NCBI GenBank assembly: GCA_002269645.1
Contig: NIVC01001564.1
Location: forward strand, 124,001 to 188,000
Length of the DNA: 64,000 nucleotides
Source of the DNA: Macrostomum lignano
Lineage: Eukaryota
Direction of reading: 5' to 3'
Under the pieces are notes generated by a model. It ran no database searches, had not been told where the DNA came from, and was given only the letters and a program-made list of their open reading frames with translations. The position numbers and the translations under genes were made by a program. Positions 510-60,989 of the stretch are shown here, one piece after another; the first letter of the stretch is position 1, and each line of letters opens with the position of its first letter.

Positions 510-640
510 TGAGCTGCATGTGGAGGCCGTTAAGTTAAGTGTCTTGCGCTCAAGGACACAAATTTTTTCAGTAGGATCGGAAATCGAACCCCGACCTTCA
601 AGTCATGAGTTCGACGCTCTAACCACTAGGCTACAACCCC
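510..640 (-). mobile_element. tRNA-derived SINE (5' portion) with CORE/Meta-like central domain
   Basis: The minus strand reads GGGGTTGTAGCCTAGTGGTTAGAGCG (A box) ... GGTTCGATTTCC (B box), followed by TTGTGTCCTTGAGCGCAAGACACTTAAC. A related copy lies at 32250-32418. The anticodon stem does not pair well, so this is not a true tRNA. Confidence 0.7.
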
Positions 641-3221: not shown

Positions 3222-5113
3222 ATGTCGACCCCCGGACTGTCCGAGAAGGCTTCGCTGGCCCAGCCGGCGGACGAGAAGGCCGTGCCGCCTCAGCTGCGCT
3301 GCAACAGCTGCTCCAAGCCGGTGTTCAACGCCTTCCAGACTCCTCACGGCTGCCGCATCTGCCAGTCCTGCGTGCAGGCCAAGCTGCACCCCACCGAGAG
3401 GCGCCTCTGCCCCGGAACCACCGAGGCCTGCAAGGATGAGGATGAGGAGATCCGCATCTGCCAGTCCAGCTGCGTGCCCGACATCGCCACGAGACGGGAG
3501 ATCAGCAAGCTGACCGTGTTCTGCCCCAATAGAGACGGAGGCTGCAAGGACCAGATGAAGTGGAGGGAGGTGGACACTCACCTGGAAAAGTGCGAATACG
3601 AGAAGGTCAGCTGCGAGTTGTGCCGGGACTCGATACTGAAGAAGAGACTCAAGTCCCACCTCAGTGACGAGTGTCGGAACGACGGGTGACCTGCGGTTTG
3701 TGCCAGCAGTCGGTGGTGCACAGCGAGATGGAGAAGAGCCACAGGAACCTGGACTCGGCCACGTGCTGTCCGAGATACACAGACTACTGTCCGTTCTGCA
3801 AAGACAAGTCCAGGAAGCTGAACCGCAAGGACTTTGTTGAACACCTAAAAACTTGTCCAGACAAACCGAACGAGTGCAAGTACAGCCACCTGGGCTGCGA
3901 GAGAAAAGCCAGAAAGTCGGACCTTGAGAAGCACTACAGAGACGAAGTCGACCATCATTTGACGCTTTTGGACTCGAAGCTGAGGCAGGTGGCCTCCGGT
4001 CCGAGATTTGCACCGCCGACTGCTGCGACTGCCGCAGCCACCGTCGTTCCCGCCGGAGGCACCGGAGAGGTGGAGGAGGTGAAGCGGAAGGTGGCCGACA
4101 TTCATGACCACTTCAAGAAGCTGCAGGTGAATGTAGCGAACTGGGCTCACACCACGCTTGAGTTTGAGCAGATGGCTGACAAATTCGGGGGCATCTCGCA
4201 AATGCGACAGTTCTTGAAGAACTTAGATGAGAAAATCAGACAGATGGAGACACCTGGAGTGGAAGAGCAACGATGGGTGACCTGTGATTTGTGCAAGAAA
4301 GAATTACTGCACAGCGATATGGAGTCAATCCACAGGAACCTGGACTCGGCCACGTGCTGTCCGAGATACACAGACTACTGTCCGTTCTGCAAAGACAAGT
4401 CCAGGAAGCTGAACCGCAAGGACTTTGTTGAGCATGCAAAAATATGTTCAAAATATACTGTTACAATCTCCGGTTTACTTCAGTACCTACAAGACATAGG
4501 CACTCGGCTGCGACTGACTTCTAACTTGAGCAATGCTGAAGGCACTGTCGATGCGAGCTCTTCAATGGTGCAGCAGAAGCTGAATGAGATCGAGTTCCGA
4601 CTGCTGAATCTCGAAGGCACGAGCTATGACGGGTTTCTGGTGTGGAAGGTGAGCAACTTCACCAAGAGGCGGCGGGAGGCCATGGACAAGCGGGTGACCA
4701 GCATTTTCTCCCAGCCCTTCCTTTCGCGTCACCAGGATTTCAAGTTCAGAGTTCGCCTCTTCCTCAACGGCAACAAGTCCGGTAAAGGAACTCACGTGTC
4801 GGTGTACCTGGTGCTCATGCAGCACGAGTTCGATGACATCCAGGAGTGGCCGCTGAAGGCGACCGTCTCCTTCAAGATGGTCAACCTGAGGAATCGCGCT
4901 GACGATGTAGCCAAGACGGTGAGATTCGACTCTGGCAATCAGAGACCGTCTGGCCGGGAGGACCTGTCGGTGTGCTGTGGTGAAGCCAAGTTCATGAGCA
5001 TCAGCCAGTTCAAGAACTCGGACCGGTTCGTCAAGAATGACAGCTTCTACCTGGAGGTTGACGTAGCCGTGGATGGCGAGAGCGGCCAGGGGCGCAGGGG
5101 AAGGAGGAAGTAG
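3222..5113 (+). CDS. TRAF-family protein (RING, TRAF zinc fingers, coiled coil, duplicated zinc finger, MATH/TRAF-C); intronless, with one -1 frameshift near 3680
   Basis: ORF 3222..3689 has a RING-like CNSC..H.CRICQSC and the motif D...RREI..L.VFCPN..GC. ORF 3671..5113 has zinc fingers and a MATH domain (SYDGFLVWKVSNF, SIFSQPF, GTHVSVYLVLM, WP). Confidence 0.92.
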
Positions 5114-5379
5114 CCGCTTGTTGAGTCAGGCTTTATCCAACATTATGCCGGCCGATTGTTGACTACTAAGTATCAATTACTGCTTTCTTTAGTTCAATTT
5201 CAACTAGATTTGTCACTCTATTTAAGTTTTATGATCAAATCGGTCGTCGACGGTCTAGTAGCTACGCTTGCATTATATCATTAATTTTTTGCTTATTTTT
5301 TCTGTGTTAGAAGAAATACGCGTAAAATGAATGACTTCTAATTGATTTTTTCTTGCCAACAACTTGGATAGCGTTTTTA

Positions 5380-6658
5380 CGACGGCTGAGCAATAAGTTT
5401 CCGGATGTGCGCAGACTGAAATAGTTAGAGAGAAAAAACAGTTACATCTTTTCAAAGTACTCTCCAGCAGATTCGATGCAAATTTTCATGCGCTCAAACC
5501 ACTTGCTGAAGCAGCTGGACCAATCTGAAGCAGGCACCTTCTCCACATGCCGGATGAAGGCCTCCACTGCAGCTCCTGGTGATCCATAGCGGATTCCACG
5601 CATCCTGCGCTTGATTTTGGAAACACAAAAAAGTCGCAGGGGGCCAGGTCGGGGCTGTAGGGTGGATGACCGAGCTCTTGAATGCGCTCTCCGGCCAGAA
5701 ACTCCGCCACCTGTCGAGCCTTGTGGGCCGGGGCGTTGTCGTGATGGAGAAGGATGCCCCGAGCTCGAGTCCTTGGGCGACGCCTGGAGAGAGCGCTCAG
5801 CACTTGTGGCAGGCAAACGTTGGCGTACCAGTTACTGGTGACTGTGCGCTGCTGCACGAGTGGAACCGTGGCCAGATGACCAGTTTTCGCCACAAAAACG
5901 GCTACCATCTGCTTCGCCACGCTGCGCTCTCGCCGAAGCTTGTTGGATGGTGGGGTGCCGCCAACTGGAGTCCACTGGGCCGACTGCTGCTTAGTCTCCG
6001 GGTCGAAACTATAGATCCAGGACTTTTCACCACTGACGATATCCCAGACCGAGTTTGAGCTGCCTCCGTTGAATCTGTCAAGCATGGTGCGGCACCAGGT
6101 CACCCGAGCCTCCTGCTCCGGAGCCAGCTGATGAGGCACCCAGCGTGCAGAAATCTTGCTCAGGTTGAGCTGTGCAAATGCAGGATCGTCCTGATGGATC
6201 CTGATGTGATGCCCATCTGTGCCTCTATCTGGGCCACAGTCACTCGGGCATCATCCTCAACCATGGCCCGGACAGCAGCAACATTATCCTCAGTCGTTGC
6301 GGAGACAGACCAGCCGCTGCGCTCCTCATCATCCAGACTCTGCCTGCCGGGATCTAGATGGTGCTTCATCCCCAAAAAGCTCCTTGCAATCGCTCAAGAC
6401 TTTCTTGCTGACGCAAACCACTTTTAAAATCGTAATAAAATCATTGCTCTAAAATGACTCCTATTGAGCTCAATTGTGAATTTGATTGATAGAGTGGGTA
6501 TGCTAGCTTGGTTTGGATGCTGCACTGGCTAAAAATGACCAGTGTGTCTGAAATTTTACAAACATTGTACTTATATAATGTACTTGACACCTATGGTGTC
6601 AGATTTTGTCAGCCGCCTTTCAACTATGCACATCCAGAAACTTATTGCTCAGCCCTCG
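5380..6658 (-). mobile_element. Mariner (DD34D) DNA transposon, frameshifted, with an internal ~30-bp deletion
   Basis: TA target duplications at 5378-79 and 6659-60, 31-bp TIRs CGAGGGCTGAGCAATAAGTTTC(C/T)GGATGTGC, and transposase motifs LHHDNAPAH and PYSPDLAPCDF. Confidence 0.95.
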
Positions 6659-7878
6659 TAATCCAAAAAATTATATATACTTCGGTATTAATTCACATGT
6701 TAATTGTGTGACTTCAATTATTTTTTATTCGCTATTACAATTGACAGGCAAAATTATAGGATGATGATGATGTAATGTCCATTTGGGTTTCCAGTATAAA
6801 AACTGGCAGTCTAAAACTTGAATTATGTTATACGAGCTAGATTGATGTCGGATATTGTTTAAACGTAGTATTTGTTGTAGCGAACTCACCGAAGCTTTAA
6901 CTAGTTAGTTAATTCCGGTAAATACAGGTCAAACCTTAGAGATTTAGTATATTGTGATGATTTTTCCTGTTTCACTATCTTAAACTATTCAGTAAAAATG
7001 AGTAGTCATGTACAATTTTATTTCTGCTTTTCATTTCACTAGCGCACTCTCTCAAATATGCACTATAAAGCAATGAAACTGATTTAGCTACTTATTCTAT
7101 GGTGCTCTTGTTGTTTTTTGTTCATTGTCTTGTTTATTTTACTTTGCTGTAGATGTCTTGGTTATTTACCTATATCCTACTGACATTGCTGAGTCCTGAC
7201 TGAGTTATATATGAGCCGATTATTGATTATCGATTTATTTGATTGAAAAACAAACGCTCGATTCCAAGTGCAGTCACAATTATTTGGGGTTAAACTGAAA
7301 TCTCAGTTTGTGATTGTGATTGTGAAGTGTACATGCCTAACGATAAATAAAGTTAGGGCCGCCGTACACTCCTGTGTGTGTGCCTGTGCGTATGACTGCG
7401 TACGTATCCGCGCGCTTGTGTGCCTGATCAGGGGAGTCGGCGGAATGGACAGTCAGCAATGCCTCTCGCCGGTTGTGTGACAATGTCGCTTAATGTACAC
7501 CAGGGCGCACACAGACCCCTGCCTCTAAAAATGGTTTGTAAGAAACAATCTGTGGTAAAATTTGCTTAAAATATTTGTTAAAACTACAAACAGTAAAATA
7601 AAAAATAAATAAACTTTTTTTGTTTTTTTTTGTTGGTAATGTTGAATTTAGACCAGGGTTGATTTATTAAGTTGCAAAGAAACAGTCAGACCGGTAAACA
7701 CAGGTGTCAACATGTACATAGCAAAGTTGTTTAATTGTAGAGCAATATTTTATAAGCAACGCTAATTAAAAAAACAGCACACGGGACACGCGCGGAAAAG
7801 TCTTCTAACCGTGGTCGAACCATTGACGCAGATAAAATGCAGAAGTAACTTAGTTAAACCGAAACTCTCTACCCACAT

Positions 7879-7967
7879 TCAGCTCTCATCGTCGCTGTCC
7901 TTTGCCAGACTGCCGAGCACCTCCGAGGGCACGGGCAGCTCAGAGATCTCAATGTTTTCTCCGCCAC
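7879..7967 (-). CDS. XAB2: Duplicate of the SYF1/XAB2 terminal exon (GGGENIEISELPVPSEVLGSLAKDSDDES*)
   Basis: Identical to 17810-17898, with an intact TGCACAG acceptor and TGA stop. Confidence 0.8.
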
Positions 7968-8139
7968 CTGTGCAATGAATTGTTCAATGGAATTATTAAT
8001 TAGGCAATATTTTTGACTTTATATTTTAAAACAAGCAATGCACGCGGATTGCACTACTTGTATAGTAGAAATACAAGAAAATAACGCTCGTACAAATGGA
8101 AATAAAATCCGTATTACAGTATAAAATGCGATCTCATTG

Positions 8140-8575
8140 GGATTAATGAAGGGAAATTCTCAATGAGATTCTCAGGCATTCAAAGACAATTCTCACTGAG
8201 ATCTAAAGACGATTCTCAATGAGATTCTCAGATATTGAAAGACGATTCCTCAGGTATTCAAAAACAAATCTCAATGAGATTCTCAGTTATTCAAAGACGA
8301 TTCTCAGTGAGATTCTCAGGTATTCAAAGACGATTCTCAATGAGATTCCTCAGGTATTCAAAGACGATTCTCAATGAGATTCCTCAGGTATTCAAAAACG
8401 ATTCTCAATAAGATTCTCAGGTTTTCAGAAGATTCTCAATGAGATTCTCAGGTATTCAAAAGACGATTCTCAATAAGATTCCTCAGGTATTCAAAAGACG
8501 ATTCTTAATGAGATTCTCAGACATTCAAAGACGATTCTTAAAGAGATCTAAAGACGATTCTCAATGAGATTCTCA
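8140..8575. repeat. ~33-bp minisatellite (GATTCTCAATGAGATTCTCAGGTATTCAAAGAC) in the duplicated last intron
   Basis: Tandem units are visible, and the same array occurs at 18070-18505. Confidence 0.9.
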
Positions 8576-8649
8576 ATCAGTCAAAAATGATTTTGAATGA
8601 GATCTTTTTAAAAAAAGTCTTTGAAGAAACCAAACCCCAACCCACTCAC

Positions 8650-9305
8650 CATCGCTATCCTCTCCAGCCTCCTCCATCACTTCTCCGCCAGCGTCGCTAT
8701 CCTCAGAGTCATCATCATCGCCGCCAATCTGGAGCTCCTCCGGATTCGCCTTGCCGCCAGCTCCGTTGCTATTGGCAACGCCAGAGGCGGCCGACTCCGA
8801 GGCAGCAGGCGCAGTTCGCATAACCCCGGCGGGTTGTTCCTGATCTTTGCCGCGTACAAATAAAATTCCTTTAGGCTGAGCAGACTGGTGCTGCTGCTGC
8901 TCAAGAGCTCGCATCGGATCGCTGCTCGAAGGGCCGGCAGAGTCGTCAGCCTGATCGTCCGAGTCGGCTGAACCAGCCGCAGCGGCCGCCGCAGCCGTAT
9001 AATTGAGCTGAGTACTGAACGCCGCAGTCACTGACCGTTTCACCCTGAGCATCTCTCTGAGCGTCTCTTCGCTGCCGTTGGCAATCTCGAATTCTTGCCA
9101 GGCGTGCCAGAACTGCTCGTGCAGCCGCGGGTCGCAAATCTGGGCGCAGTAGGCGTAGACGGACCTGGCCCGGTCCACTTCGCCTAGGCGGGTCTCCAGC
9201 TCGGCGAAGCGCAGGCAGAACTCTCTGGCCTCGGCGTCTGGCAGAGATTCGATGGCTTTCTCGTACACTGCTCGGGTGTGAGTGACGCCTAGCAGTTCCG
9301 CGACC
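8650..9305 (-). CDS. XAB2: Duplicate of the SYF1/XAB2 penultimate exon (656 nt, frame intact)
   Basis: CCCGCAG acceptor and G|GTGAGT donor are intact. The translation AELLGVTHTRAVYEKAI... matches the XAB2 C-terminal HAT repeats. Confidence 0.85.
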
Positions 9306-9369
9306 CTGCGGGACGGTTTTGTGGTTTGGGTGTGTATAGTTAGTTGGTTAATAAGTAAGTCAGTCATTT

Positions 9370-9422
9370 CTGTTTGTTTGTCTGTCTGTCTGTCTGTCTG
9401 TCCTCGTGTCTGTCTGTCCTCG

Positions 9423-9459
<37 letters not shown>

Positions 9460-9462
9460 TCG

Positions 9463-9540
<78 letters not shown>

Positions 9541-9652
9541 GTTGTCTGTCTGTCTGTCTTCGAGTCTGTCTCTCTGTCTTCGTGTCAGTCAGTCAGTCAG
9601 TCAGTCAGTCAGTCAGTCAGTCAGTCAGTCAGTCAGTCAGTCAGTCAGTCAG
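9370..9652. repeat. Compound microsatellite (TCTG)n then (TCAG)n
   Basis: Directly visible in the sequence. Confidence 0.97.
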
Positions 9653-10224
9653 GGGGCAAACGGCAACTTAAACCGAGGGACTCTGTGACATCCGCCAGCT
9701 TTTCGTTTTTCGAGGAGGCTCTTCCCCCTCCTTTTCGTTCTGGCCTGGCGTGGAAGCGGCTAGCTTCCTCGTCTTGGTCTGCTGGTGGGGGACGGATCAA
9801 CCCCTGCTGCTTTTTTGCGGGGCAGGTGGCTGCTAAGTAGTTGGCTGCTGGCTAAGCGCCAACTACCCATCGACAGCCCTTAGTTGCAACTGGTACCACA
9901 CGGGTTCTCGAGGGCCGCTCTTGTGGGGGAGGGCTCGGGCGTCGGCTGTCAACTCGACCTGGCGCCTGTGTCCCAAGCCCGCAGCCGGCCTCCCGCCCCC
10001 TGATCTTGCAGAGTGTGGACCGGGGGCCTGCCGGAGCCTCGCCTGGGAGCAATCCTGGGATAAGACGGCAACCCAAAGCTTCTCTGCTGTTTACCGTGGC
10101 AGAGGGTAGCTCCACGGAGCTGGCTGGGGGTATATCCAGTCCCCGAGCGGTTACCCCCCCTCTTTTCTACATTTCAGTTTTTCCATTTCAGCCTACTCTG
10201 CATGGATAAATCAAAACCACCTGA

Positions 10225-14940
<4,716 letters not shown>

Positions 14941-15280
14941 TCCTTGTGCTCTTTTACCTTGGGGTTGCGATAGGGGCCTCGCGGCCTATTCGCGGCGCCT
15001 GCGCCCCCCGTCAGTAGTAAGTAAGTAAGTAAGTTATCTGATATTATGCCGGCCTATTTTTGACTACTAGTATCAATTACTGCTTTCTTTAGTTCAATTT
15101 CAACTAGATTTGTCACTCTATTCAAGTTTTATGATCAAATCGGTCGTCGACGGTCTAGTAGCTACGCTTGCATTATATCATTAAATTTTTTGCTTATTTT
15201 TTCTGTGCTAGGAGAAATACGCGTAAAATGAATGACTTCTAATTGATTTTTTCTTGCCAACAACTTGGATAGCGTTTTTA

Positions 15281-16590
15281 CGAGGGCTGAGCAATAAGTT
15301 TCCGGATGTGCCCAGATAGAAATAGTTAGAGAGAAAAAAACAGTTACATCTTTTCAAAGTACTCTCCAGCAGATTCAATGCAAATTTTCATGCACTCAAA
15401 CCACTTGCTGAAGCAGCTGGACCAATCTGAAGCAGGCACCTTCTCCACATGCTGGATGAAGGCCTCCACTGCAGCTCCTGGTGATCCATAGCGGATTCCA
15501 CGCATCCTGCGCTTGATTTGTGGAAGCACAAAAAAGTCGCAGGGGCCAGGTCGGGGCTGTAGGGTGGATGACCGAGCTCTTGAATGCGCTCTCCGGCCAG
15601 AAACTCCGCCACCTGTCGAGCCTTGTGGGCCGGGGCGTTGTCGTGATGGAGAAGGATGCCCCGAGCTCGAGTCCTTGGGCGACGCCTGGAGAGAGCGCTC
15701 AGCGCTTCTGGCAGGCAAACTTTGGCGTACCAGTCACTTTGACTGTGCGCTGCTGCACGAGTGGAACCGTGGCCAGATGACCAGTTTTCGCCACAAAAAC
15801 GGCCACCATCTGCTTCGCCACGCTGCGCTCTCGCCGAAGCTTGTTGGATGGTGGGGTGCCACCAACTGGAGTCCACTGGGCCGACTGCTGCTTAGTCTCC
15901 GGGTCGAAACTATAGATCCAGGACTTTTCACCACTGACGATATCCCAGACCGAGTTTGAGCTGCCTCCGTTGAATCTGTCAAGCATGGTGCGGAACCAGG
16001 TCACCCGAGCCTCCTTCTGCTCCGGAGTCAGCTGATGAGGCACCCGGCGTGCAGAAATCTTGCTCAGGTTGAGCTGCGAATGCAGGATCGTCCTGATGGA
16101 TCCTGATGAGATGCCCATCTCTGCCTCTATCTGGGCCACAGTCACTCGGGCATCATCCTCAACCATGGCCCGGACAGCAGCAACATTATCCTCGGTCGTT
16201 GCGGAGACAGACCAGCCGCTGCGCTCCTCATCATCCAGACTCTGCCTGCCGCGCCGAAATTCGGCAAACCAGTCAAAAACGGTGGATCTAGATGGTGCTT
16301 CATCCCCAAAAAGCTCCTGCAATCGCTTAAGACTTTATTGCTGACGCAAACAACTTTTAAGATCGTGATAAATCATTGCCCTAAAATGACTCCTATTGAG
16401 CTCCATTGTGAATTTGATAGATAGAGTGGGTATGCTAGCTTGGTTTGGGTGCTGCACTGGCTAAAAATGACCAGTGTGTCTGAAACTTTACAAACATTGT
16501 ACTTATATAATGTACTTGACACCTATGGTGTCAGATTTTGTCAGCCGCCTCTCAACTATGCACATCCAGAAACTTATTGCTCAGCCCTCG
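15281..16590 (-). mobile_element. Mariner (DD34D) DNA transposon, 1310 bp, with two -1 frameshifts
   Basis: TA TSDs at 15279-80 and 16591-92, the same TIRs as the first copy, an HTH region GDEAPSRSTVFDWFAEFRRGR and the motif HHDNAPAH. Confidence 0.95.
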
Positions 16591-17809
16591 TAATCCAAAA
16601 AATTATATATACTTCGGTATTAATTCACATGTTAATTGTGTGACTTCAATTATTTTTTATTCGCTATTACAATTGACAGGCAAAATTATAGGATGATGAT
16701 GATGTAATGTCCATTTGGGTTTCCAGTATAAAAACTGGCAGTCTAAAACTTGAATTATGTTATACGAGCTAGATTGATGTCGGATATTGTTTAAACGTAG
16801 TATTTGTTGTAGCGAACTCACCGAAGCTTTAACTAGTTAGTTAATTCCGGTAAATACAGGTCAAACCTTAGAGATTTAGTATATTGTGATGATTTTTCCT
16901 GTTTCACTATCTTAAACTATTCAGTAAAAATGAGTAGTCATGTACAATTTTATTTCTGCTTTTCATTTCACTAGCGCACTCTCTCAAATATGCACTATAA
17001 AGCAATGAAACTGATTTAGCTACTTATTCTATGGTGCTCTTGTTGTTTTTTGTTCATTGTCTTGTTTATTTTACTTTGCTGTAGATGTCTTGGTTATTTA
17101 CCTATATCCTACTGACATTGCTGAGTCCTGACTGAGTTATATATGAGCCGATTATTGATTATCGATTTATTTGATTGAAAAACAAACGCTCGATTCCAAG
17201 TGCAGTCACAATTATTTGGGGTTAAACTGAAATCTCAGTTTGTGATTGTGATTGTGAAGTGTACATGCCTAACGATAAATAAAGTTAGGGCCGCCGTACA
17301 CTCCTGTGTGTGTGCCTGTGCGTATGACTGCGTACGTATCCGCGCGCTTGTGTGCCTGATCAGGGGAGTCGGCGGAATGGACAGTCAGCAATGCCTCTCG
17401 CCGGTTGTGTGACAATGTCGCTTAATGTACACCAGGGCGCACACAGACCCCTGCCTCTAAAAATGGTTTGTAAGAAACAATCTGTGGTAAAATTTGCTTA
17501 AAATATTTGTTAAAACTACAAACAGTAAAATAAAAAATAAATAAACTTTTTTTTTTTTTTTTTGTTGGTAATGTTGAATTTAGACCAGGGTTGATTTATT
17601 AAGTTGCAAAGAAACAGTCAGACCGGTAAACACCGGTGTCAACATGTACATAGCAAAGTTGTTTAATTGTATAGAAATATTTTATAAGCAACACTAATTA
17701 AAAAACAGCACACGGGACACGCGCGGAAAAGTCTTCTAACCGTGGTCGAACCATTGACGCAGATAAAATGCAGAAGTAACTTAGTTAAACCGAAACTCTC
17801 TACCCACAT

Positions 17810-20800
17810 TCAGCTCTCATCGTCGCTGTCCTTTGCCAGACTGCCGAGCACCTCCGAGGGCACGGGCAGCTCAGAGATCTCAATGTTTTCTCCGCCACCT
17901 GTGCAATGAATTGTTCAATGGAATTATTAATTAGGCAATATTTTTGACTTTATATTTTAAAACAAGCAATGCACGCGGATTGCACTACTTGTATAGTAGA
18001 AATACAAGAAAATAACGCTCGTACAAATGGAAATAAAATCCGTATTACAGTATAAAATGCGATCTCATTGGGATTAATGAAGGGAAATTCTCAATGAGAT
18101 TCTCAGGCATTCAAAGACAATTCTCACTGAGATCTAAAGACGATTCTCAATGAGATTCTCAGATATTGAAAGACGATTCCTCAGGTATTCAAAAACAAAT
18201 CTCAATGAGATTCTCAGTTATTCAAAGACGATTCTCAGTGAGATTCTCAGGTATTCAAAGACGATTCTCAATGAGATTCCTCAGGTATTCAAAGACGATT
18301 CTCAATGAGATTCCTCAGGTATTCAAAAACGATTCTCAATAAGATTCTCAGGTTTTCAGAAGATTCTCAATGAGATTCTCAGGTATTCAAAAGACGATTC
18401 TCAATAAGATTCCTCAGGTATTCAAAAGACGATTCTTAATGAGATTCTCAGACATTCAAAGACGATTCTTAAAGAGATCTAAAGACGATTCTCAATGAGA
18501 TTCTCAATCAGTCAAAAATGATTTTGAATGAGATCTTTTTAAAAAAGTCTTTGAAGAAACCAAACCCCAACCCACTCACCATCGCTATCCTCTCCAGCCT
18601 CCTCCATCACTTCTCCGCCAGCGTCGCTATCCTCAGAGTCATCATCATCGCCGCCAATCTGGAGCTCCTCCGGATTCGCCTTGCCGCCAGCCCCGTTGCT
18701 ATTGGCAACGCCAGAGGCGGCCGACTCCGCAGCAGCAGGCGCAGTTCGCATAACCCCGGCGGGTTGCTCCTGATCTTTGCCGCGTACAAATAAAATTCCT
18801 TTAGGCTGAGCAGACTGCTGCTGCTGTTGCTCAAGAGCTCGCATCGGGTCGCTGCTCGAAGGGCCGGCAGAGTCCTCAGCCTGATCGTCCGAGTCAGCTG
18901 AACCAGCCGCAGCGGCCGCCGCAGCCGTATAATTGAGCTGAGTACTGAACGCCGCAGTCACTGACCGTTTCACCCTGAGCATCTCTCTGAGCGTCTCTTC
19001 GCTGCCGTTGGCAATCTCGAATTCTTGCCAGGCGTGCCAGAACTGCTCGTGCAGCCGCGGGTCGCAAATCTGGGCGCAGTAGGCGTAGACAGCCCTGGCC
19101 CGGTCCACTTCGCCTAGGCGGGTCTCCAGCTCGGCGAAGCGCAAACAGAACTCTCTGGCCTCGGCGTCCGGCAGAGATTCGATGGCTTTCTCGTACACTG
19201 CTCGGGTGTGGGTGACGCCTAGCAGCTCCGCCACCCTGCGAAACGGTTTTGTGGTTGGGTTTTCATAGTTAGTTGGTTAATAAGTAGGTCAGTCATTTCT
19301 GTTTGTCTGTTTGTCTGTCTGTCTGTCTTAGTGTCTGCCTGTCCGTCTGTCTTAGTGTCTGTCTGTCTATCTGTCTGTCTTAGTGTCTGTCTTAGTGTCT
19401 GCCTGTCCGTCAGTCAGTCAGTCAGTCAGTCAGTCAGTCAGTCGGTCAGTCAGTCAGTCAGTCAGTCAGTCAGTCAGTCAGTCAGTCAGTCAGTCAGTCA
19501 GTCAGTCAGTCAGTCAGTCAGTCAGTCAGTCAGTCAGTCAGTCAGTCAGTCAGTCAGTCAGTCAGTCAGTCAGTCAGTCAGTCAGTCAGTCAGTCAGTCA
19601 GTCAGTCAGTCAGTCAGTCAGTCAGTCAGTCAGTCAGTCAGTCAGTCAGTCAGTCAGTCAGTCAGTCAGTCAGTCAGTCAGTCAGTCAGTCAGTCAGTCA
19701 GTCAGTCAGTCAGTCAGTCAGTCAGTCAGTCAGTCAGTCAGTCAGTCAGTCAGTCAGTCAGTCAGTCAGTCAGTCAGTCAGTCAGTCAGTCAGTCAGTCA
19801 GTCAGTCAGTCAGTCAGTCAGTCAGTCAGTCAGTCAGTCAGTCAGTCAGTCAGTCAGTCAGTCAGTCAGTCAGTCAGTCAGTCAGTCAGTCAGTCAGTCA
19901 GTCAGTCAGTCAGTCAGTCAGTCAGTCAGTCAGTCAGTCAGTCAGTCAGTCAGTCAGTCAGTCAGTCAGTCAGTCAGTCAGTCAGTCAGTCAGTCAGTCA
20001 GTCAGTCAGTCAGTCAGTCAGTCAGTCAGTCAGTCAGTCAGTCAGTCAGTCAGTCAGTCAGTCAGTCAGTCAGTCAGTCAGTCAGTCAGTCAGTCAGTCA
20101 GTCAGTCAGTCAGTCAGTCAGTCAGTCAGTCAGTCAGTCAGTCAGTCAGTCAGTCAGTCAGTCAGTCAGTCAGTCAGTCAGTCAGTCAGTCAGTCAGTCA
20201 GTCAGTCAGTCAGTCAGTCAGTCAGTCAGTCAGTCAGTCAGTCAGTCAGTCAGTCAGTCAGTCAGTCAGTCAGTCAGTCAGTCAGTCAGTCAGTCAGTCA
20301 GTCAGTCAGTCAGTCAGTCAGTCAGTCAGTCAGTCAGTCAGTCAGTCAGTCACAGCGCACACACTGCAGTCAATTTACCTGTTAATATAAATGTTGAACA
20401 TGGGAGCACGCTGATTGGCTGGCAGGCGCTCCAACGCTCGCTCGTACACATTCATAGCTCGCTTGGCCAGTCCGTGCTCCTCTTCCAGCTTGGCGTACAG
20501 CAGGAAGAAGGGGCGGGACAGCTCCGCCGGGCAGTGCTCCAGGCACTGCTCAAATAGGTCCCGAGCACGCTCGAGCTTGGCGCCGCCGTAACGGTCGGAG
20601 AAATGAATCAAGTAGGTCTTCCACAGCTCCTCGACGTTCGGCCATTTGAATAGAGCGATGCCGCGTTCGTACACCTGCGAGTGACAACGCAGAACACTGC
20701 ATAGATACCACCAACTGGAACCCACACTTCAGAACACTAAATGGAACCCACACTTCAGAACACTAAATGGAACCCACACTTTATGACACCATCAAATGGA

Positions 20801-23800
20801 ACCCACACTTCAGGACACCATCAACTCGAACCCAAACTTCAGAACACCATCAAATGGAACCCACACTTCAGGACACTATCAACTGGAACCCAAACTTCAG
20901 AACACCATTAAATGGAACCCACACTTCAGGCCACCATCAAATGGAACCCAGACTTCAGGACACCATCAACTAGAACCCACACTTCAGAACACCATCAAAT
21001 GGAACCCACACTTCAGAACATCATCAAATGGAACCCAAACTTCAGAACACCATCAAATGGAACCCACACTTCAGGACACCATCAACTGGAACCCACACTT
21101 CAGAACACCAAATGGAACCCACACTTCAGGACACCATTAAATGGAACCCACACTTCAGAACACCATTAAATGGAACCCACACCTCAGGACACCATCAAAT
21201 GGAACCCACACTTCAGAACACCATCAACTGGAACCCACACTGCATAGATACCACAAACTAGAAACCCACACTTTATGACACCATCAAATGGAACCCACAC
21301 TGCATAGATACCACAAACTAGAAACCCACACTTTATGACACCATCAAATGGAACCCACACTGCATAGATACCACAAACTAGAAACCCACGCTTTATGACA
21401 CCATCAAATGGAACCCACACTGCATAGATACCACAAACTAGAAACCCACACTTTATGACACCATCAAATGGAACCCACACTGCATAGATACCACAAACTA
21501 GAAACCCACGCTTTATGACACCATCAAATGGAACCCACACTGCATAGATACCACAAACTAGAAACCCACGCTTTATGACACCATCAAATGGAACCCACAC
21601 TGCATAGATACCACAAACTAGAAACCCACGCTTTATGACACCATCAAATGGAACCCACACTGCATAGATACCACAAACTAGAAACCCACACTTTATGACA
21701 CCATCAAATGGAACCCACACTGCATAGATACCACAAACTAGAAACCCACACTTTATGACACCATCAAATGGAACCCACACTGCATAGATACCACAAACTA
21801 GAAACCCACGCTTTATGACACCATCAAATGGAACCCACACTGCATAGATACCACAAACTAGAAACCCACACTTTATGACACCATCAAATGGAACCCACAC
21901 TGCATAGATACCACAAACTAGAAACCCACGCTTTATGACACCATCAAATGGAACCCACACTGCATAGATACCACAAACTAGAAACCCACGCTTTATGACA
22001 CCATCAAATGGAACCCACACTGCATAGATACCACAAACTAGAAACCCACGCTTTATGACACCATCAAATGGAACCCACACTGCATAGATACCACAAACTA
22101 GAAACCCACACTTTATGACACCATCAAATGGAACCCACACTGCATAGATACCACAAACTAGAAACCCACGCTTTATGACACCATCAAATGGAACCCACGC
22201 TTCAGGACACCACCTGTAACTCACCCTAAAAGCCTCTTCAAAATAGGCGCTCTCCTCCAGCATAACGGCATAGTTAATAACAATCTGCGGAGTTGCGATC
22301 TGCAGATCCAGCATTCGGTCATAGGCAGCCCTGGCCGTGGCCAGAGTGCCATAGGATTCTTCTAAATCAACATAGAAAGACCAGAGCTTAAGCGACTTGT
22401 GCAGGCGGGCTTGCACAGGCTCTGACCGGTCGTAGAAATCCACTTTGTGCGACGGCGGGGCCACAGCTTTGGCCAGGAGGGCCAGAGCCTTCTCTGGCGG
22501 CCCGTGGCGCAGCTCCATCTCAGCCCACTGGCACCACACGTAGGCCAAATCGTCCACTGTTCTGCAGTGTTTGGAGGAATTTTATCTTCCTCATTTTTTG
22601 TCTGTTTTTAGTCCACTAAAATATTACCAGTGCCTTGCCCTTTCGCCCCTGAGAGTTTTTAACTACTTCGATATAATCTTCCAAGTCCCTGAATCGTCCA
22701 ATTATTGCAATTTTCTAACTTCATCAATTTTCAGAATCTCCCTAGTCTACCTAATCTTCTATATAATCTTTCTAATCTCTTCAGTCTTCCTAATCTACTA
22801 GATCTTCCTAATCCTTCTAATATTCCTAATCTCCTCAGTCTCCCTAATCTCCTCAATCTCCCTAATCCCCTCAATATCCGTAATCCCCTTAATCTCCCTA
22901 ATCTCCTTTATCTCCCTAATCTCCTCATCTTCCTAATCTCCTCAATCTTCCTAATCTTCTCAGTCTTCCTAATCTCCTCAGTCTTCCTAATCTCCTCAAT
23001 CTCCCTAATCCCCTTAATCTCCCTAATCTCCCCAATCTTCCTAATCTTCTCAATCTCCCTAATCTCCTCAATCTCCCTAATCCCCTTAATCTCCCTAATC
23101 TCCTCAATCTTCCTAATCTTCTCAATCTCCCTAATCTTCTCAATCTCCCTAATCTTCTCAATCTCCCTAATCTTCCCAATCTCCCTAATCTTCCCAATCT
23201 CCCTAATCTTCCCAATCTCCCTAATCTCCTCAATCTCCCTAATCCCCTTAATCTCCCTAATCTCCTCAATCTTCCTAATCTTCTCAATCTCCCTAATCTT
23301 CCCAATCTCCCTAATCTTCTCAATCTCCCTAATCTTCTCAATCTCCCTAATCTTCTCAATCTCCCTAATCTTCCCAATCTCCCTAATCTTCTCAATCTCC
23401 CTAATCTCCTCAATCTCCCTAATCCCCTTAATCTCCCTAATCTCCTCAATCTTCCTAATCTTCTCAATCTCCCTAATCTTCCCAATCTCCCTAATCTTCC
23501 CAATCTCCCTAATCTTCTCAATCTCCCTAATCTCCTCAATCTCCCTAATCCCCTTAATCTCCCTAATCTCCTCAATCTTCCTAATCTTCTCAATCTCCCT
23601 AATCTTCCCAATCTCCCTAATCTTCTCAATCTCCCTAATCTTCTCAATCTCCCTAATCTTCTCAATCTCCCTAATCTTCCCAATCTCCCTAATCTTCTCA
23701 ATCTCCCTAATCTCCTCAATCTCCCTAATCCCCTTAATCTCCCTAATCTCCTCAATCTTCCTAATCTTCTCAATCTCCCTAATCTTCCCAATCTCCCTAA

Positions 23801-25589
23801 TCTTCTCAATCTCCCTAATCTCCTCAATCTTTCTAATCTTCTCAATCTTTCTAATCTTCTCAATCTCCCCAATCTCCTCAATCTTCCTAATCTTCCTAAA
23901 TATTCCTGATCTCCTTAAATCATCCTAATCTCCTCTCTCTCTAATCTTGCTTTCCCCTATCTGTAAAATCCTCTTATTCCAATTGGAAGATATGAACAAT
24001 TCCCACCTGTGATCGGCAGCGGCAGCCTTTTCAAAAACAGTCCTAGCGTCAGACAGCTGGTCGTGCTTCTCGTAGAACTTGGCGAACTCCGTCCAGAGGG
24101 TGCAGGCCCGACCAGCGCTAGCCTTGTGCGGATCCACAGTCTTCACGGCCTCCATGTAGGTGCCGATCTGCTCAGCCGGCCGGTCCGCCAGCAGCTGCAC
24201 CCGCTTGTGCCACTCCGGCACGCAGTGCGGGTTCTGCCTGAGCAGCACGGAGTTCAACAGCAGCGGCCGGCGCTCAATCAGGTGCTCAAATCTGAGCATG
24301 GCCAAGTCAGACTCAAGCGACTCTTCAGAGTCACCGGCAGCGGCGGAGCCTTCCTCGGCTGCCTCCATCAGCTGGCGCACCAGGCCTTCCTCAAATTCGG
24401 CGCTGGCGTCGAACACCTGGCTGAAGTCGCGCACGGTGGTGACCGTGGCCAGGGCCTCTTCGAATACGTCTCTGCGGTTTGGGAGGCGGGAATAATTAAG
24501 GGATGGACTCCAAGAGGATTAGCTTTGAGCACTGAGAATGAATGGTCGATTGCTAGCGTCAAATTATACCTAAGTTGGATTTTAGACCAGGGTTCGATTC
24601 TCAATCTGAAGTACCCTGAGTTCGATTCTCGATCTGGAGTACCCTGAGTTCGATTCTCAATCTGGAGTACCCTGAGTTCGATTCTCAATCTGGGGTACCT
24701 GGGTTCGCGTCTCGATCTAAAGTACCTGGGTTCGATTCTCAATCCGGAGTACCTGGGTTCGCGTCTCGATCTAAAGTACCTGGGTTCGATTCTCAATCTG
24801 GAGTACCTGGGTTCGATTCTCAATCTGGAGTACCTGGGTTTGATTCTCGATGTGAAGTACCTGGGTTCGATTCTCAAGCTGGAGTACCTGGGTTTGATTC
24901 TGGCACCAAAGAGTACCTGGGTTCGATTCCGGCACCAAAGAGTAGCTGGGTTCGATTCTGGCACCAAAAACTACTTGGGTTCGAGCTGCTTGAACTCACC
25001 TGGCCCTGCTGATATTCCCAGCTCTTAAGTGCCATTCAGCCAGGGCAGTCCACAGTCTGCCAACCTGATCGGTGTACCGACTAATCCCCTGCCGAATAAT
25101 TGCCTCGGCGTTGACGCTGGTGACCTCCAATGGATTTCTCGACAGCAGATTGCACAGCTCCTGCCACAGAGCGTGCTTGGACTTGCCCCTTGAACTCTGA
25201 AACGAATCGTCATTGATGATGGCAACCAGGTTGGCAACGGCTTCGTCCAATCGCTGGTGCTCCAATAAAAAATCGACGAAATCTTCGCGACCTTCCGGCT
25301 TGAAGCGGACGTAGCGGCGGAGGACGCGCAGCGCCGTCTCCAGGCAGCCGTGCGGAGCGTGCAGGCGGACCAGGCGAAGGTAGGGCGGCCACAGCCGGTC
25401 GTGCTGGGTGAGGGGCAGCGAGCGGAGTGCGCGATCGAAGGCCCGGCGAGACTCGGTGATTCGGCCTTGCCTGTGGAGGTGCGAATTGGAGCAGCAATTG
25501 GAACACAATAAAGACACTAAGACACGAGGACACAGACAGACAGACAGAAAGACAGACAGATGGACAGACAGACACAGACACAGACAGAC

Positions 25590-25666
<77 letters not shown>

Positions 25667-26018
25667 GGCAGCCTTACCTGGTGAGAAAGCGGCAATAGTC
25701 CAGCCAGATTCTGGGCATCTTGTGCATGTGCACCAGCGCTCTCTCGTGAGCGGCATTGGCAACGCTGAGCTCAGCCTGCAGATCTGCATCGCTAACATCG
25801 GGCGAGTTGGCCCGCGCTCTGGCCAGCAGTCTCCGGTAGCGGAGGTAGCGGTACCAGAGTTTGTAGCTGCCCGGCAGCTGCTTCACCGCCCGTTCGTAGA
25901 TCTGGCACACAGCCACCGGGCGCCGGCCGTCAGCCTTGTGCTCAACATAGCGAAGCCAGGACTTCACTGAGTACGGGTTGCGAAGAATCTCCTCCTCGTA
26001 GGGGAGATCTTCTTCTTC
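17810..26018 (-). CDS. XAB2: Pre-mRNA splicing factor SYF1/XAB2. Exons: 26018-25678, 25470-25000, 24471-24007, 22561-22225, 20674-20379, 19235-18580, 17898-17810
   Basis: All junctions are GT-AG with consistent phases (2655 nt in total). The translation matches XAB2 throughout (EEDLPYEEEILRNP, LLLNSVLLRQNPH, IATPQIVINYA, KLERARDLFEQ, NPEELQIG). The start codon is in an upstream exon. Confidence 0.95.
18070..18505. repeat. ~33-bp minisatellite in the last SYF1 intron
   Basis: GATTCTCAATGAGATTCTCAGG units are visible. Confidence 0.9.
19295..20351. repeat. Microsatellite: short (TCTG)-like tract, then ~0.9 kb of pure (CAGT)n, intronic
   Basis: Directly visible in the sequence. Confidence 0.98.
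20696..22215. repeat. Intronic minisatellite: ~29-bp units (20.7-21.24 kb), then 16 copies of a 60-bp dimeric unit (21241-22200)
   Basis: The 60-nt display lines are identical except at one A/G site. Confidence 0.97.
22740..23925. repeat. Intronic 9-bp-based satellite (CTCAATCTC/CCTAATCTT) with a ~180-bp higher-order period
   Basis: Lines 23221/23401 and 23521/23701 are identical. Confidence 0.95.
24585..24985 (+). repeat. Intronic 27-29-bp minisatellite built on a tRNA T-arm/B-box (GTACCTGGGTTCGATTCTC)
   Basis: About 15 units are visible. Confidence 0.9.
25520..25670. repeat. (GACA)n microsatellite, intronic
   Basis: Directly visible in the sequence. Confidence 0.95.
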
Positions 26019-32596: not shown

Positions 32597-33735
32597 TTAA
32601 ACTTTTTTGTGTCCCTCGGCATAGACCTGATAGGCGATGCGGTCAAGATCTCGCCTGCCCTGCGACGTCAGCTGCCGGCCGCCGGCCTCGTCCTTGGCAA
32701 CAAGGCCCATCGACTCGAGGCCTTGGAGACTCTTGCGGAGCGGGCCCCGGTAGCAGCGGGACGAGTGGTTGGGCTGGTGGCCACGGCGCCTCACCTTGCC
32801 GTACACCTGGGGGAATTGGGAATAGGTTACAGTAGTACAGATGAAATTCAATTTGGGTGATTCACAACTTTTTATACCAGCAATTCCAAGGTTTTCTCGA
32901 CTTGAAGATCTACCTAAGAGGGTGCTGGTGATCCACCAACTAAGGATCTGAGGCCCAGCAATTCAGGATCTGGGAGGCTGGCCCAGCAACTGATGATCTG
33001 GGAGGCTAGTCCAGCAACTGAGGATCTGGAAGACTGGCCCAGCAACAGGATCTGGAAAGCTGGCCCAGCAACTGAGGATTTGGGAGGCTGGCCCAGCAAC
33101 TGAAGATCTGGGAGGCTGGCCCAGCAACTGAGAATCTGGGAGGCTGGCCCAGTAACTGAGGATCTGGGAGGCTGGCCCAGCATCTGAGGATCTGGGAGGC
33201 TGGCTCAGCAACTAAGGATCTGGGAGGCTGGCCCAGCAACTGAGGATCTGGGAGGCTGGTGGCCAAGCAACTGAGGATCTGGGAGGCTGGCCCAGTAACT
33301 GAGGATCAGGGAGGCTGGCCCAGCAACTGAGAATCTGGGAGGTTGGCCCAGCAACTGAGGATCTGGGAGGCTGGCCCAGCAACTGAAGATCTGTTACTGG
33401 GCAATTTCAAAACGAACCACCTGGAGCATGGAATATGAAAGCCATAGTAAGTCCATCACTCCCACACTCACTTTGGTCAGAGCGCCAACTCCCACAGGGG
33501 CGCGCACGTACAGGTGGCGCAGCAGAGAGGCGGAGCGCACAAAGAACCAATCGGAATCAGCGGGCGCCAGCTCGTTGGCTGCAGACAGTTTAACAACGTC
33601 AGCCCATTCCGGCACAGCCAGCTTGCCAGTCTTCTTCAAATAGGCGGCCAGAGCTCGGACTAGCTTCTGCTGGCTGACACTTTTTACGCCAACAAATGTG
33701 TGGGCGGACTTGCCGCTTGCAGCTTGCTGTGCCAT
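32597..33735 (-). CDS. RPS19: 40S ribosomal protein S19 (eS19), 157 aa; exons 33735-33472 and 32806-32597
   Basis: Motifs [26 protein letters not shown] and [16 protein letters not shown]. The intron AAA|GTGAGT...CCCAG|GTG is phase 0. Confidence 0.95.
32942..33392. repeat. 28-bp minisatellite (GAGGATCTGGGAGGCTGGCCCAGCAACT) in the RPS19 intron
   Basis: About 16 units are visible. Confidence 0.93.
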
Positions 33736-60933: not shown

Positions 60934-60989
60934 CTGTCTCCCAAGAAAACGAAAGGTGAAGGTTACCCAGAAGGAAGGTGGGATGCCAG

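Follow-up and report, generated by a model that had tools for sequence, protein, structure and literature searches.

In the genome of the flatworm Macrostomum lignano, we found a young LINE lying exactly between two direct copies of a 4.5-kb segment that separates a TRAF-family gene from the body of the gene for the splicing factor SYF1. We consider it about an even chance (probability roughly 0.5) that the tandem duplication is real and LINE-associated, bringing together two versions of the TRAF-SYF1 interval that had diverged beforehand. The window analysed is a 64-kb stretch of contig NIVC01001564.1, and the linkage of the two copies is known here from the contig sequence alone.

The 3' part of the TRAF-family gene (3222-5113, forward strand) was recognized from ORFs with Pfam matches to MATH_2 (E=7e-26) and zf-TRAF (E=5e-7). 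Its stop codon ends at 5113, and 19 bases (5114-5132) separate it from the first copy, A (5133-9652). Copy A comprises the TRAF 3' flank, the degenerate remnant of a mariner-like DDE transposase on the reverse strand (5486-6375; ORFs matching DDE_3 at E=2e-7 and Transposase_1 at E=1e-5), the SYF1 3' UTR, the last two SYF1 exons and the start of a microsatellite-bearing intron. In blastn alignments, 5133-6349 matched 15034-16251 at 96.6% identity and the remainder of A, 6350-9652, matched 16284-19585 at 97.1%, in direct orientation; the mariner-like remnant also has a counterpart in the second copy, A' (15034-20352). The unique part of A' ends at about 19297; beyond it come (TCTG)n and then (GTCA)237, which fills the SYF1 intron. 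Between A and A' lies a unique insert of 5,381 bp (9653-15033), the LINE. The order TRAF - A - LINE - A' - rest of SYF1, with copies of about 4.5 kb, had been proposed in a sequence-only reading of this DNA and was borne out by these alignments.

The LINE ends in CCCCCCGTCAGTAG(TAAG)4, with the tail at 15018-15033, and A' begins directly after it at 15034 (TTATC), the counterpart of 5133 in A, in agreement with the earlier description of this junction. The right end of A falls within a microsatellite (9369-9652) composed of (TCTG)n and then (TCAG)16.5, which is truncated by the LINE 5' end; its counterpart in A' runs on as a 948-bp (GTCA)237 array ending at 20352. The 7-nt microhomology mentioned in the sequence-only reading is AGTCAGG, present on the forward strand at 5124-5130, 2 nt to the left of A, and again as the final 7 nt before the LINE (9646-9652), at the microsatellite/LINE junction. 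Outside microsatellites the 7-mer occurs just twice in 1-20400, and the chance of finding it at both relevant sites is roughly 1e-3 to 1e-2. No short target-site duplication separate from A was found around the LINE at its two junctions. There are no Ns or gaps across the window, including both junctions.

The LINE is near full-length, lies on the forward strand and, from its domain content and the names of its best matches, appears to be I/LOA-like. A 5' UTR is followed by ORF1 (from an ATG at 10202, or at 10285 as the window reads, to 11124), by ORF2 (11124-14940) and by (TAAG)4. ORF2 encodes an AP-endonuclease (PF14529, E=1e-22), RT (PF00078, E=1.5e-30), RNase H (PF00075, E=1e-12) and a CCHC motif. 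The element shares with I/LOA-group retrotransposons this sequence of ORFs and ORF2 domains with CCHC at the C-terminus, an overlap of the ORF1 stop and ORF2 start (TAATG), and a simple-repeat tail in place of poly(A); it differs in belonging to a Macrostomum-specific family and in its tail unit, TAAG. The best named match (P0141), a homologue of the 'Lian-Aa1 retrotransposon protein', is 33% identical. Since a relative (L001, 55% identical) also ends in a simple-repeat tail, (ATG)4(AGTG)3, the 3' junction can be taken as the genuine LINE end, while a UTR of roughly 550 nt and complete ORFs suggest that the other junction lies exactly at the 5' end of the element.

ORF2 is 99-100% identical to many M. 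lignano copies; for the family, identities of 98-100% were found with M. lignano entries only, and it has one copy in the 64-kb window. Private amino-acid changes number at most 3 in 1,021 codons, all within the 5' third of the LINE. G/C homopolymers carry three 1-nt deletions, the first between 10202 and 10258 and the other two near 11432 and 11568; the 5' part also holds 12 of the 18 G/C runs of five or more. A 27-nt indel looks like a subfamily marker. The position of the private changes hints weakly that the LINE may combine parts of two copies, as either LINE-LINE recombination or an assembler switch within it could produce.

Both copies contain an intact pair of SYF1 exons on the reverse strand. 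The last exon (7879-7967 in A, including the TGA stop) is identical to that of A' (17810-17898), which is contiguous with the rest of SYF1. The 656-nt penultimate exon (8650-9305; Pfam HAT_Syf1_CNRKL1_C, E=3e-50) has its counterpart at 18580-19235. The AG acceptors, GTGAGT donor, open frame and TGA stop that had been reported for A are present in both copies, and the donor at 20379 of the upstream exon (20379-20677, reverse strand, 5' limit approximate; Pfam E=2e-43) is in frame with the penultimate exon of either. Our recount of the nucleotide differences between the exon sets gave exactly the 17 reported before, 13 synonymous and 4 replacements (S/A, D/E, H/Q, S/A), all confined to 8762-9302 within the penultimate exon. 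A formal estimate by the Nei-Gojobori method (dS 0.079, dN 0.007, omega 0.09; binomial p=5.8e-6) revealed that the signal of coding constraint is real.

The divergence between A and A', 1.63% overall, is a sharp mosaic in which substitution-free blocks alternate with blocks at 2.8-3.8%. Two blocks of about 1 kb are without substitutions, their contents including the last exon and a 33-bp intron minisatellite, and the penultimate exon differs by 3.1%; the boundaries of the identity blocks do not follow exon limits. M. lignano possesses three subgenomes, whose divergence has been given as 1.39-1.58% from k-mers, 1.91-2.41% from alignments and 2.2% genome-wide (PMC10733133), and the A/A' divergence appears to match this level. 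Had the copies diverged in place, at 1.63%/2 per copy, about 19 private residues would be predicted in the LINE. With at most 3 present, the Poisson probability is about 1e-5 by a hand estimate, and divergence in place was rejected on the age of the LINE. As the LINE is far younger than the divergence between A and A', the copies differed already before the join. The differences are best read as variation, older than the join, between two functional full-length SYF1 genes, and the copy-A exons would look constrained because, up to that point, a different full-length SYF1 had used them as its working 3' end. The sequence-only reading had concluded that the copies diverged under constraint and, from this, that A was no recently made, dead duplicate. 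This step does not hold, because the dN/dS signal need not postdate the duplication when the LINE is so young, the divergence mosaic and its level that of the subgenomes.

The versions joined would be two of the three subgenome copies, most simply two heterozygous copies of the large chromosome. Version Y may have gained the LINE 19 bases past the TRAF stop, probably by target-primed reverse transcription (TPRT), and the 5' side of the LINE would have been joined to a broken or stalled end of the (TCAG)n intron microsatellite in version X. If this took place in the same event, a break in the homologue may have captured the cDNA end, with a product that is architecturally a 4.5-kb 'giant target-site duplication' comparable to L1-bridged tandem duplications. 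If it took place later, AGTCAGG may have been used for a microhomology-mediated template switch or end-joining. Either route would give TRAF(X) - A(X) - microsatellite - LINE - A'(Y) - microsatellite - rest of SYF1(Y), in which TRAF would have an intact 3' flank, SYF1 its own last exons in A', and the copy-A exons would be a passenger.

In favour of a real join, the duplication and one LINE share their ends at both sides. The absence of a short target-site duplication would be expected, because A itself would be the duplication. The consensus also carries the junction between microsatellite and LINE 5' end linked to A-type diagnostic variants. This disfavours a simple misjoin, because neither a LINE-free chromosome nor one with the LINE in the TRAF flank could supply such a junction. 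The presence of AGTCAGG at both sites is more in keeping with a microhomology-mediated biological junction than with a software overlap. Against a real join, joins of homologues in the germline are rarer than those of sister chromatids, and each sub-mechanism requires one coincidence of the order of 1e-2 to 1e-3, either the 7-mer arising by chance or the LINE landing beside it.

Microhomology-mediated replicative rearrangements with template switching between homologues are known as FoSTeS/MMBIR in the field of human copy-number variants. The present locus shares with them the 7-nt microhomology at a breakpoint, a breakpoint within a long, uninterrupted tetranucleotide repeat at which replication could stall, and a product that is a tandem duplication of two different haplotypes. 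It differs in that no more than 2 nt separate the other breakpoint from the LINE insertion site, which under FoSTeS/MMBIR would be chance. No evidence of replication stress or of complex MMBIR-type junctions was found at this locus.

Direct tandem duplications bridged by human L1 have been documented in tumours (Rodriguez-Martin et al. 2020, PMC7058536, Fig. 7) and in L1-overexpressing cells, where small tandem duplications were seen at L1 insertion sites (Mendez-Dorantes et al. 2024 preprint, PMC11702581). There, as here, the LINE lies between two direct copies, the upstream one stopping at its 5' end and the downstream one beginning at its 3' tail; the ordinary short target-site duplication is absent, and the proposed mechanism is that the TPRT-extended end is joined to another DNA end, located downstream on a different chromatid. 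Those cases concern L1 with poly(A) in somatic cells, whereas ours concerns a full-length, RNase H-bearing, I/LOA-like LINE with a (TAAG)n tail in a flatworm germline genome, and a duplicated segment of only 4.5 kb. In addition, the copies here were 1.6% diverged beforehand, so that the partner would have been a homologue or homeologue rather than the sister chromatid.

The most serious alternative, which we regard as somewhat less probable than a real join but well worth considering, is that the assembler set one interval, taken from two subgenome copies, in tandem as A and A', and that the duplication is present on no chromosome. Its likeliest route would be that this LINE family sits within the intron microsatellite of one haplovariant and immediately after the TRAF stop of another, and that the contig path switches between them inside the near-identical 5.4-kb LINE. 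Two haplovariants would display just this combination of subgenome-level divergence and a much younger LINE, and mostly synonymous exon differences are expected between two functional genes. With copies that are 99-100% identical to one another, this LINE family is a classic bridge for misjoins; moreover, the leftover deletions in the G/C homopolymers suggest poor polishing there, and the restriction of private changes to the 5' third would agree with a switch. The one public M. lignano assembly named in the literature consulted, Mlig_3_7, was produced from PacBio reads at about 130x long-read coverage with Canu (errorRate 0.04) and Pilon (PMC5730564), and this 4% tolerance exceeds the A/A' divergence. 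Its users have called it redundant, error-containing and partly chimeric between paralogues (PMC10733133; PMC5730564; PMC12801592), and errors, expanded or collapsed haplovariants and chimeric paralogues have been reported, with 93% of read pairs at more than one locus (PMC10733133).

As in the false (heterotype) duplications and chimeric paralogues that arise when heterozygous or polyploid genomes are assembled, and that have been discussed for Mlig_3_7 (PMC10733133), the adjacent copies differ by haplotype or subgenome divergence, coding differences are mostly synonymous and a high-copy repeat lies at the junction. In contrast to them, the sequence runs from one copy to the other without a gap or contig end, each junction is a clean LINE terminus free of Ns, and the A-type/microsatellite/LINE-5' junction cannot be derived from simple haplovariants without an additional real insertion. 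The assembler explanation thus requires a real molecule on which A-type sequence and (TCAG)16.5 are linked to the LINE 5' end. This implies that the family inserted a second time, independently and with unchanged orientation, into the same 4.5 kb of another haplovariant, and that a misjoin was made despite about 130x coverage (PMC5730564), or else a chimeric read broken exactly at the LINE end. The 7-nt match is far too short for a software overlap, and the 5'/3' asymmetry of the LINE is weak, given the concentration of G/C runs at the 5' side and the apparent subfamily marker.

A much less probable account is an old duplication through the AGTCAGG microhomology, with both exon sets selected as alternative SYF1 3' ends, gene conversion erasing differences in two blocks, and a young LINE landing later at the junction. 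The two intact exon pairs with good splice sites and matching phase, omega of 0.09 (p=6e-6), a mosaic of the kind produced by gene conversion between tandem paralogues, and the 7-mer as a possible mark of the original junction would all agree with it. However, the LINE must then have hit within a few bases of an existing junction (a chance of about 1e-4, as the family has a single copy in 64 kb), the divergence is no different from the genome-wide subgenome value and so needs no extra history, and the identity blocks disregard exon boundaries. Use of copy A would also require transcription past the poly(A) signals of A' (ATTAAA at +142 and AATAAA at +209 past the stop) and then through 5.4 kb of antisense LINE, and neither SYF1 C-terminus was found in any protein of a 5.8-billion-sequence database. 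Among the candidate explanations in the sequence-only reading, recombination between haplotypes or homeologs, through the LINE or the 7-nt microhomology, and concatenation of two haplotypes by the assembly lead. A functional alternative 3' end from copy A has no positive support, as the differences read as pre-existing between full-length SYF1 genes, and this analysis yielded no evidence for a new functional end of SYF1. Least probable of all is a giant target-site duplication on one chromatid or its sister, in which a single retrotransposition with cuts staggered by 4.5 kb left initially identical copies that later diverged in place or received gene-conversion patches from homeologous loci; the layout matches a target-site duplication exactly, L1-bridged duplications between sister chromatids have been described (PMC7058536) and about 2 kb of A/A' is still substitution-free, but the conversion variant needs three separate homeologue tracts since a very recent insertion, two of them reaching the duplication ends exactly, and an identical minisatellite beside a 3%-different exon is left unexplained.

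Beyond the duplication, the remaining SYF1 exons were located on the reverse strand within 22200-26081 (approximately 22557-22200, 24434-23925, 25517-24996 and 26081-25674), and the introns among them are filled with satellite.

Repeat finding and blastn identified a direct duplication in which positions 5133-6349 correspond to 15034-16251 (96.6%) and 6350-9652 to 16284-19585 (97.1%). The order along the window is copy A (5133-9652), a plus-strand LINE of 5,381 bp that is single-copy within the window (9653-15033), and copy A' (15034 onward), with this single LINE standing between direct host copies. The LINE ends in ...CCCCCCGTCAGTAG(TAAG)4 at 15033, and base 15034 is the first that is homologous to 5133. 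The sequence-only reading had described a LINE between two direct copies, a (TAAG)4 tail abutting the first base of A', a TRAF gene to the left and the rest of SYF1 to the right, and our results agree throughout: the TRAF-family gene (plus strand) has its stop at 5113, and the rest of SYF1 occupies 20379-26081 on the minus strand. The LINE is flanked as ...GTCAGTCAG-LINE-TTATCTGATA..., and no short repeat common to the two flanks, that is, no short target-site duplication, was found around it. The duplicated segment appears to stand in place of the ordinary short target-site duplication.

At its right end, A runs into a compound microsatellite of (TCTG)n and then (TCAG)16.5 that terminates at 9652; LINE-specific sequence with a UTR of ~550 nt begins at 9653, the putative 5' end of the element. 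In A' the same microsatellite extends as a (GTCA)237 array (19405-20352), directly followed by the next SYF1 exon on the minus strand. This array, 948 bp in length and 99% pure, makes up nearly all of a 1,143-nt intron in SYF1, which is an essential spliceosome gene, its length being a long-read consensus value that is uncertain in the animal; A retains only 16.5 tetranucleotide units before the LINE. No Ns or gaps are present in the window, and the sequence is continuous across both junctions. A 7-mer, AGTCAGG, occurs twice outside microsatellites in 20 kb, and one occurrence ends 2 nt before the start of A, a placement with a chance probability of ~1e-3 to 1e-2.

We then examined the SYF1 exons carried by the two copies. 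The last two exons, both on the minus strand, lie at 9305-8650 and 7967-7879 in A and at 19235-18580 and 17898-17810 in A'. In each copy the acceptors are AG, the donor is GTGAGT, the frame is open and the stop is TGA. The upstream SYF1 donor at 20379 leaves AG/G, which either copy completes, and the intact acceptors, donor, frame and stop previously noted in A were confirmed, in a phase compatible with both copies. The N-terminal, middle and C-terminal Syf1 HAT-repeat domains PF23233, PF23220 and PF23231 follow in order on successive minus-strand exons (E values of 1e-31 to 1e-50); the gene is an ordinary SYF1/XAB2 pre-mRNA splicing factor. Every SYF1 intron is filled with tandem repeats, including a 60-bp unit x24 (20765-22198), an 18-bp unit x65 (22772-23947), a 27-bp unit x12 (24586-24984) and (ACAG)36 (25532-25671), the last being the TCTG part of the A/A' microsatellite in reverse complement. 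Neither the A-type nor the A'-type SYF1 C-terminus is represented among 5.8 billion proteins, the best match being 48% identical; many M. lignano LINE fragments are present in this collection, unlike the SYF1 C-terminal exons. Existing M. lignano SYF1 gene models apparently stop at the microsatellite intron. In the Rfam scan of the window no structured RNA was detected in A, and the sole match was a marginal tRNA-like one at 572-640 (minus strand, 30.3 bits; gathering score 29).

We obtained the same count of exon differences as reported earlier, 17, comprising 13 synonymous changes and 4 replacements. A formal Nei-Gojobori calculation gave a dS of 0.079, a dN of 0.007 and an omega of 0.09 (binomial test against neutrality, p=5.8e-6), indicating that the synonymous excess is real. 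Over the whole segment before the microsatellite, 69 of 4,226 aligned positions differ between A and A' (1.63%). These differences form a mosaic: substitutions amount to 2.8% in 5133-6619, 3.4% in 7622-7768 and 3.8% in 8762-9368, with none in 6620-7621 or 7769-8761. Under a uniform rate, a mismatch-free run of 1 kb has a probability of ~7e-8. The last SYF1 exon, the whole last intron, which holds a 33-bp minisatellite in 12 copies, and the 3' portion of the penultimate exon fall in identical blocks; the 17 exon differences are all confined to the last diverged block. The block boundaries do not follow functional or exon boundaries, and an identical intron minisatellite beside an exon differing by 3% is the reverse of the pattern expected if the copies had diverged in place under constraint. 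In the first diverged block (2.8%), the minus strand also carries the degenerate remnant of a mariner-like DDE transposase (5486-6375; A' counterpart 15388-16310).

Most loci are present in three subgenome copies (S, L1 and L2) in the inbred DV1 line, and within-subgenome heterozygosity is negligible (PMC10733133). Divergence between M. lignano subgenomes is 1.39-1.58% by k-mers and 1.91-2.41% by alignment, and values of 2.2% genome-wide and 1.1% in coding sequence have been given (PMC10733133). The 1.63% between A and A' falls within this subgenome range of 1.4-2.4%.

The age of the LINE was assessed. It encodes ORF1, for which no Pfam match was found, together with an AP-endonuclease (PF14529, E=1e-22), a reverse transcriptase (PF00078, E=1.5e-30) and an RNase H (PF00075, E=1e-12), the ORF1 stop overlapping the ORF2 start as TAATG. 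Judged by domain content, it is an ordinary RNase H-bearing (I/LOA-like) LINE. Its ORF2 is 98-100% identical to dozens of M. lignano UniRef entries, everything else being at most 57% identical, which indicates that the window derives from this flatworm or one very closely related. Compared with 39 other copies, the element in the window has private differences in 3 of 1,021 comparable codons, one of them beside a frameshift. Three frame breaks are present, each a 1-nt deletion in a G/C homopolymer (G5 to G4, GGG to GG, C7 to C6), reflecting either long-read consensus errors left uncorrected or a small number of real mutations; whichever their origin, the LINE is very young and appears essentially full length. 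Had A and A' diverged in place, ~0.8% change would be expected per copy and in the LINE, corresponding to ~19 neutral replacements in the examined codons. At most 3 private residues were found (probability ~1e-5 by a hand Poisson estimate), and the copies, with their mosaic divergence of 1.63%, are not as young as the LINE.

The divergence therefore predates the LINE that forms the junction, and its mosaic ignores exon boundaries, so that the earlier claim of coding constraint on both copies after the duplication fails. Because the A/A' divergence equals that between subgenomes, the 13:4 synonymous excess is best read as a record of the purifying selection that two full-length SYF1 genes experienced before their 3' parts became neighbours. 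It is uninformative on whether copy A works in its present position.

We consider a real, LINE-associated join of two diverged chromosome versions to have a probability of about one half, three possible routes taken together. L1-bridged direct tandem duplications are known in which target-primed reverse transcription extends a DNA end that then becomes joined to another, downstream end on a different chromatid (PMC7058536 Fig. 7; PMC11702581). Their architecture fits the present case in that the duplicated copies meet the LINE at its 3' tail and, apparently, at its 5' end, with no short target-site duplication present; as in known LINE-mediated tandem segmental duplications, a single LINE lies between direct copies. 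The present case, if real, would differ from these in being in the germline, non-mammalian, full length and between diverged homologues. As the copies were already diverged, and are far older than the LINE, the partner in such a join must have been a diverged homologue or homeologue and not the sister chromatid.

In the first route, an end extended by target-primed reverse transcription would be joined to a downstream DNA end of the homologue or homeologue. In the second, the LINE would insert into one chromosome version 19 bases (5114-5132) past the TRAF stop, with the loss of 2 nt and without a target-site duplication; later, a fragile (TCAG)n end of the other version would pair with the AGTCAGG directly upstream of the LINE and prime the copying of the LINE and A'. 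The rarity of the 7-mer favours this second route, which leaves the adjacency of LINE and 7-mer to chance. In the third, unequal recombination between two LINE copies lying 4.5 kb apart in two versions would generate a composite LINE. All private changes do lie in the 5' third of the element (10202-11941), namely the three homopolymer frameshifts, a 27-nt indel and 2-3 residues, with none in the 3' 1,000 codons (11942-14940), and other family copies display no such asymmetry (0.21% versus 0.24%). The indel consists of 27 extra nt in ORF1 at ~10334-10360 (nine residues, TSTPATGAS) found in none of the other M. lignano copies compared; it is flanked by GG(T/G)GCGTC repeats and probably either marks a subfamily or reflects a deletion shared by most of the sampled copies. 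Most G/C homopolymers of the LINE also sit in its 5' third, and the clustering may reflect either homopolymer density or a composite element. As homopolymers concentrate in the 5' part and the indel is repeat-flanked, we keep it as no more than a weak hint of the third route. The window sequence by itself does not separate the three routes. The parental haplovariants would include a full-length SYF1 with A-type exons, or an empty site ...GAGTCAGGCTTTATC..., and the microhomology route would be matched by a parental site ...GAGTCAGG-LINE, which would also fix the number of G residues at the LINE 5' end.

Recombination and assembly concatenation, both proposed in the sequence-only reading, remain the two leading explanations. 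The latter, in which two haplovariants were falsely concatenated through a misjoin bridged by the LINE, is a serious contender to which we assign appreciable but less than even odds. The assembly in current use was built from PacBio reads (~130x coverage; public run SRX1063031) with Canu at 4% error tolerance and polished with Pilon (PMC5730564). This tolerance exceeds the A/A' divergence, which is itself that of the M. lignano subgenomes, and a 5.4-kb repeat whose copies are 99-100% identical could readily bridge a misjoin. Users of the assembly call it redundant, error-containing and partly chimeric between paralogues (PMC10733133; PMC12801592). However, the junction running from A-type sequence through (TCAG)16.5 to the LINE 5' end could be supplied neither by a LINE-free version nor by one with the order TRAF, flank, LINE. 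A chimera would need a second real insertion of the same family and orientation within the same 4.5 kb, followed by a misjoin despite ~130x coverage, or else a chimeric read broken exactly at the LINE end. The 7 nt are too short for a software overlap. Assembly false duplications share with this locus copies at subgenome divergence, but here no gap, Ns or contig end separates the copies. If the join is not real, the structure is a textbook false duplication.

A more far-reaching version of the join between chromosome versions, which we regard as unlikely, is that a single aberrant germline retrotransposition in this neopolyploid flatworm bridged two permanently heterozygous copies of the large chromosome. 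The resulting 4.5-kb 'giant target-site duplication' would have transferred sequence from one subgenome to another and left spare, intact and slightly different SYF1 3' exons as a candidate alternative end. An old duplication retained for functional alternative SYF1 3' exons, with the LINE landing later at the junction, is improbable: the exons of both sets are intact, in compatible phase and with splice sites that could be used, but a late landing at an old junction is a coincidence of ~1e-4. No positive evidence was found for the functional alternative 3' end that had been put forward earlier, and the poly(A) signals of A' itself, ATTAAA and AATAAA, lie at +142 and +209 from its stop, ahead of the 5.4 kb of antisense LINE that would have to be transcribed through. 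Least probable of all is that a giant target-site duplication arose on one chromatid and its copies then diverged, a scenario which the age of the LINE rejects and which gene conversion could rescue only with three tracts, two of them stopping exactly at the duplication boundaries.

If real, the locus would represent a clean germline LINE-mediated tandem segmental duplication that is neither mammalian nor due to L1, and its partner would be a diverged homologue instead of a sister chromatid. Retrotransposition intermediates would then exchange sequence between the supposedly isolated M. lignano subgenomes, and exon sets would be duplicated without breaking either neighbouring gene. If an artefact, it would be a concrete case in which a heterozygous LINE insertion and near-identical haplovariants yield a false tandem duplication whose intact second exon set mimics gene gain and makes the dN/dS signal misleading. 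In both cases, a low dN/dS between adjacent copies is no proof that both function in their present place, and the date of a join must be set against the date of divergence.

Several searches addressed the LINE 5' end and flanked copies of the family. A relative from a JGI metagenome (55% identical) also ends in a simple-repeat tail; its contig begins inside the element and gave no 5' end. Among gene models reading into the 5' UTR, the furthest (P0083) reaches 9994, 340 nt from the first base of the element, and most stop at ~10130-10175. The LINE 5' start, searched as an exact pattern in metagenome contigs, gave no matches, and exact-protein look-ups for flanked genomic copies found neither the LINE ORF1 nor a full-length relative (P0030) on record. 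A LINE-fusion gene model (P0078, RING-type), considered as a possible record of the neighbouring TRAF gene next to the LINE in an independent assembly, proved unrelated. We also rejected 5' or 3' transduction of A by the LINE, for which the insertion point would have to equal the segment's own start, and a microsatellite-specific LINE, as the (GTCA)237 array is free of insertions and the target unit differs from the TAAG of the tail.

Other repeats were observed in the window. The TRAF coding region contains an internal 182-nt direct repeat (3678-3859 and 4269-4450, 87% identity) that doubles a zinc-finger module (CCPRYTDYCPFCKDKSRKLNRKDFVEH twice). A second tandem duplication of 5.0 kb (43037-48046 and 48056-53063, 99.8% identity) lies in a strongly G-skewed region; no LINE is present at its junction, and its long minus-strand ORFs (e.g. 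44839-46176) gave no Pfam match. Likewise, no Pfam match was found in a G-skewed tandem array at 34005-41921 (period ~2.27 kb, ~3.5 copies, 92-98% identity). A ribosomal protein S19e gene (32597-33741, minus strand; Pfam E=1e-26) has an intron with a 28-bp minisatellite x16 (32952-33393), and pol fragments of a Gypsy-type LTR retrotransposon (reverse transcriptase, RNase H and integrase) occupy 58236-61071 on the minus strand.
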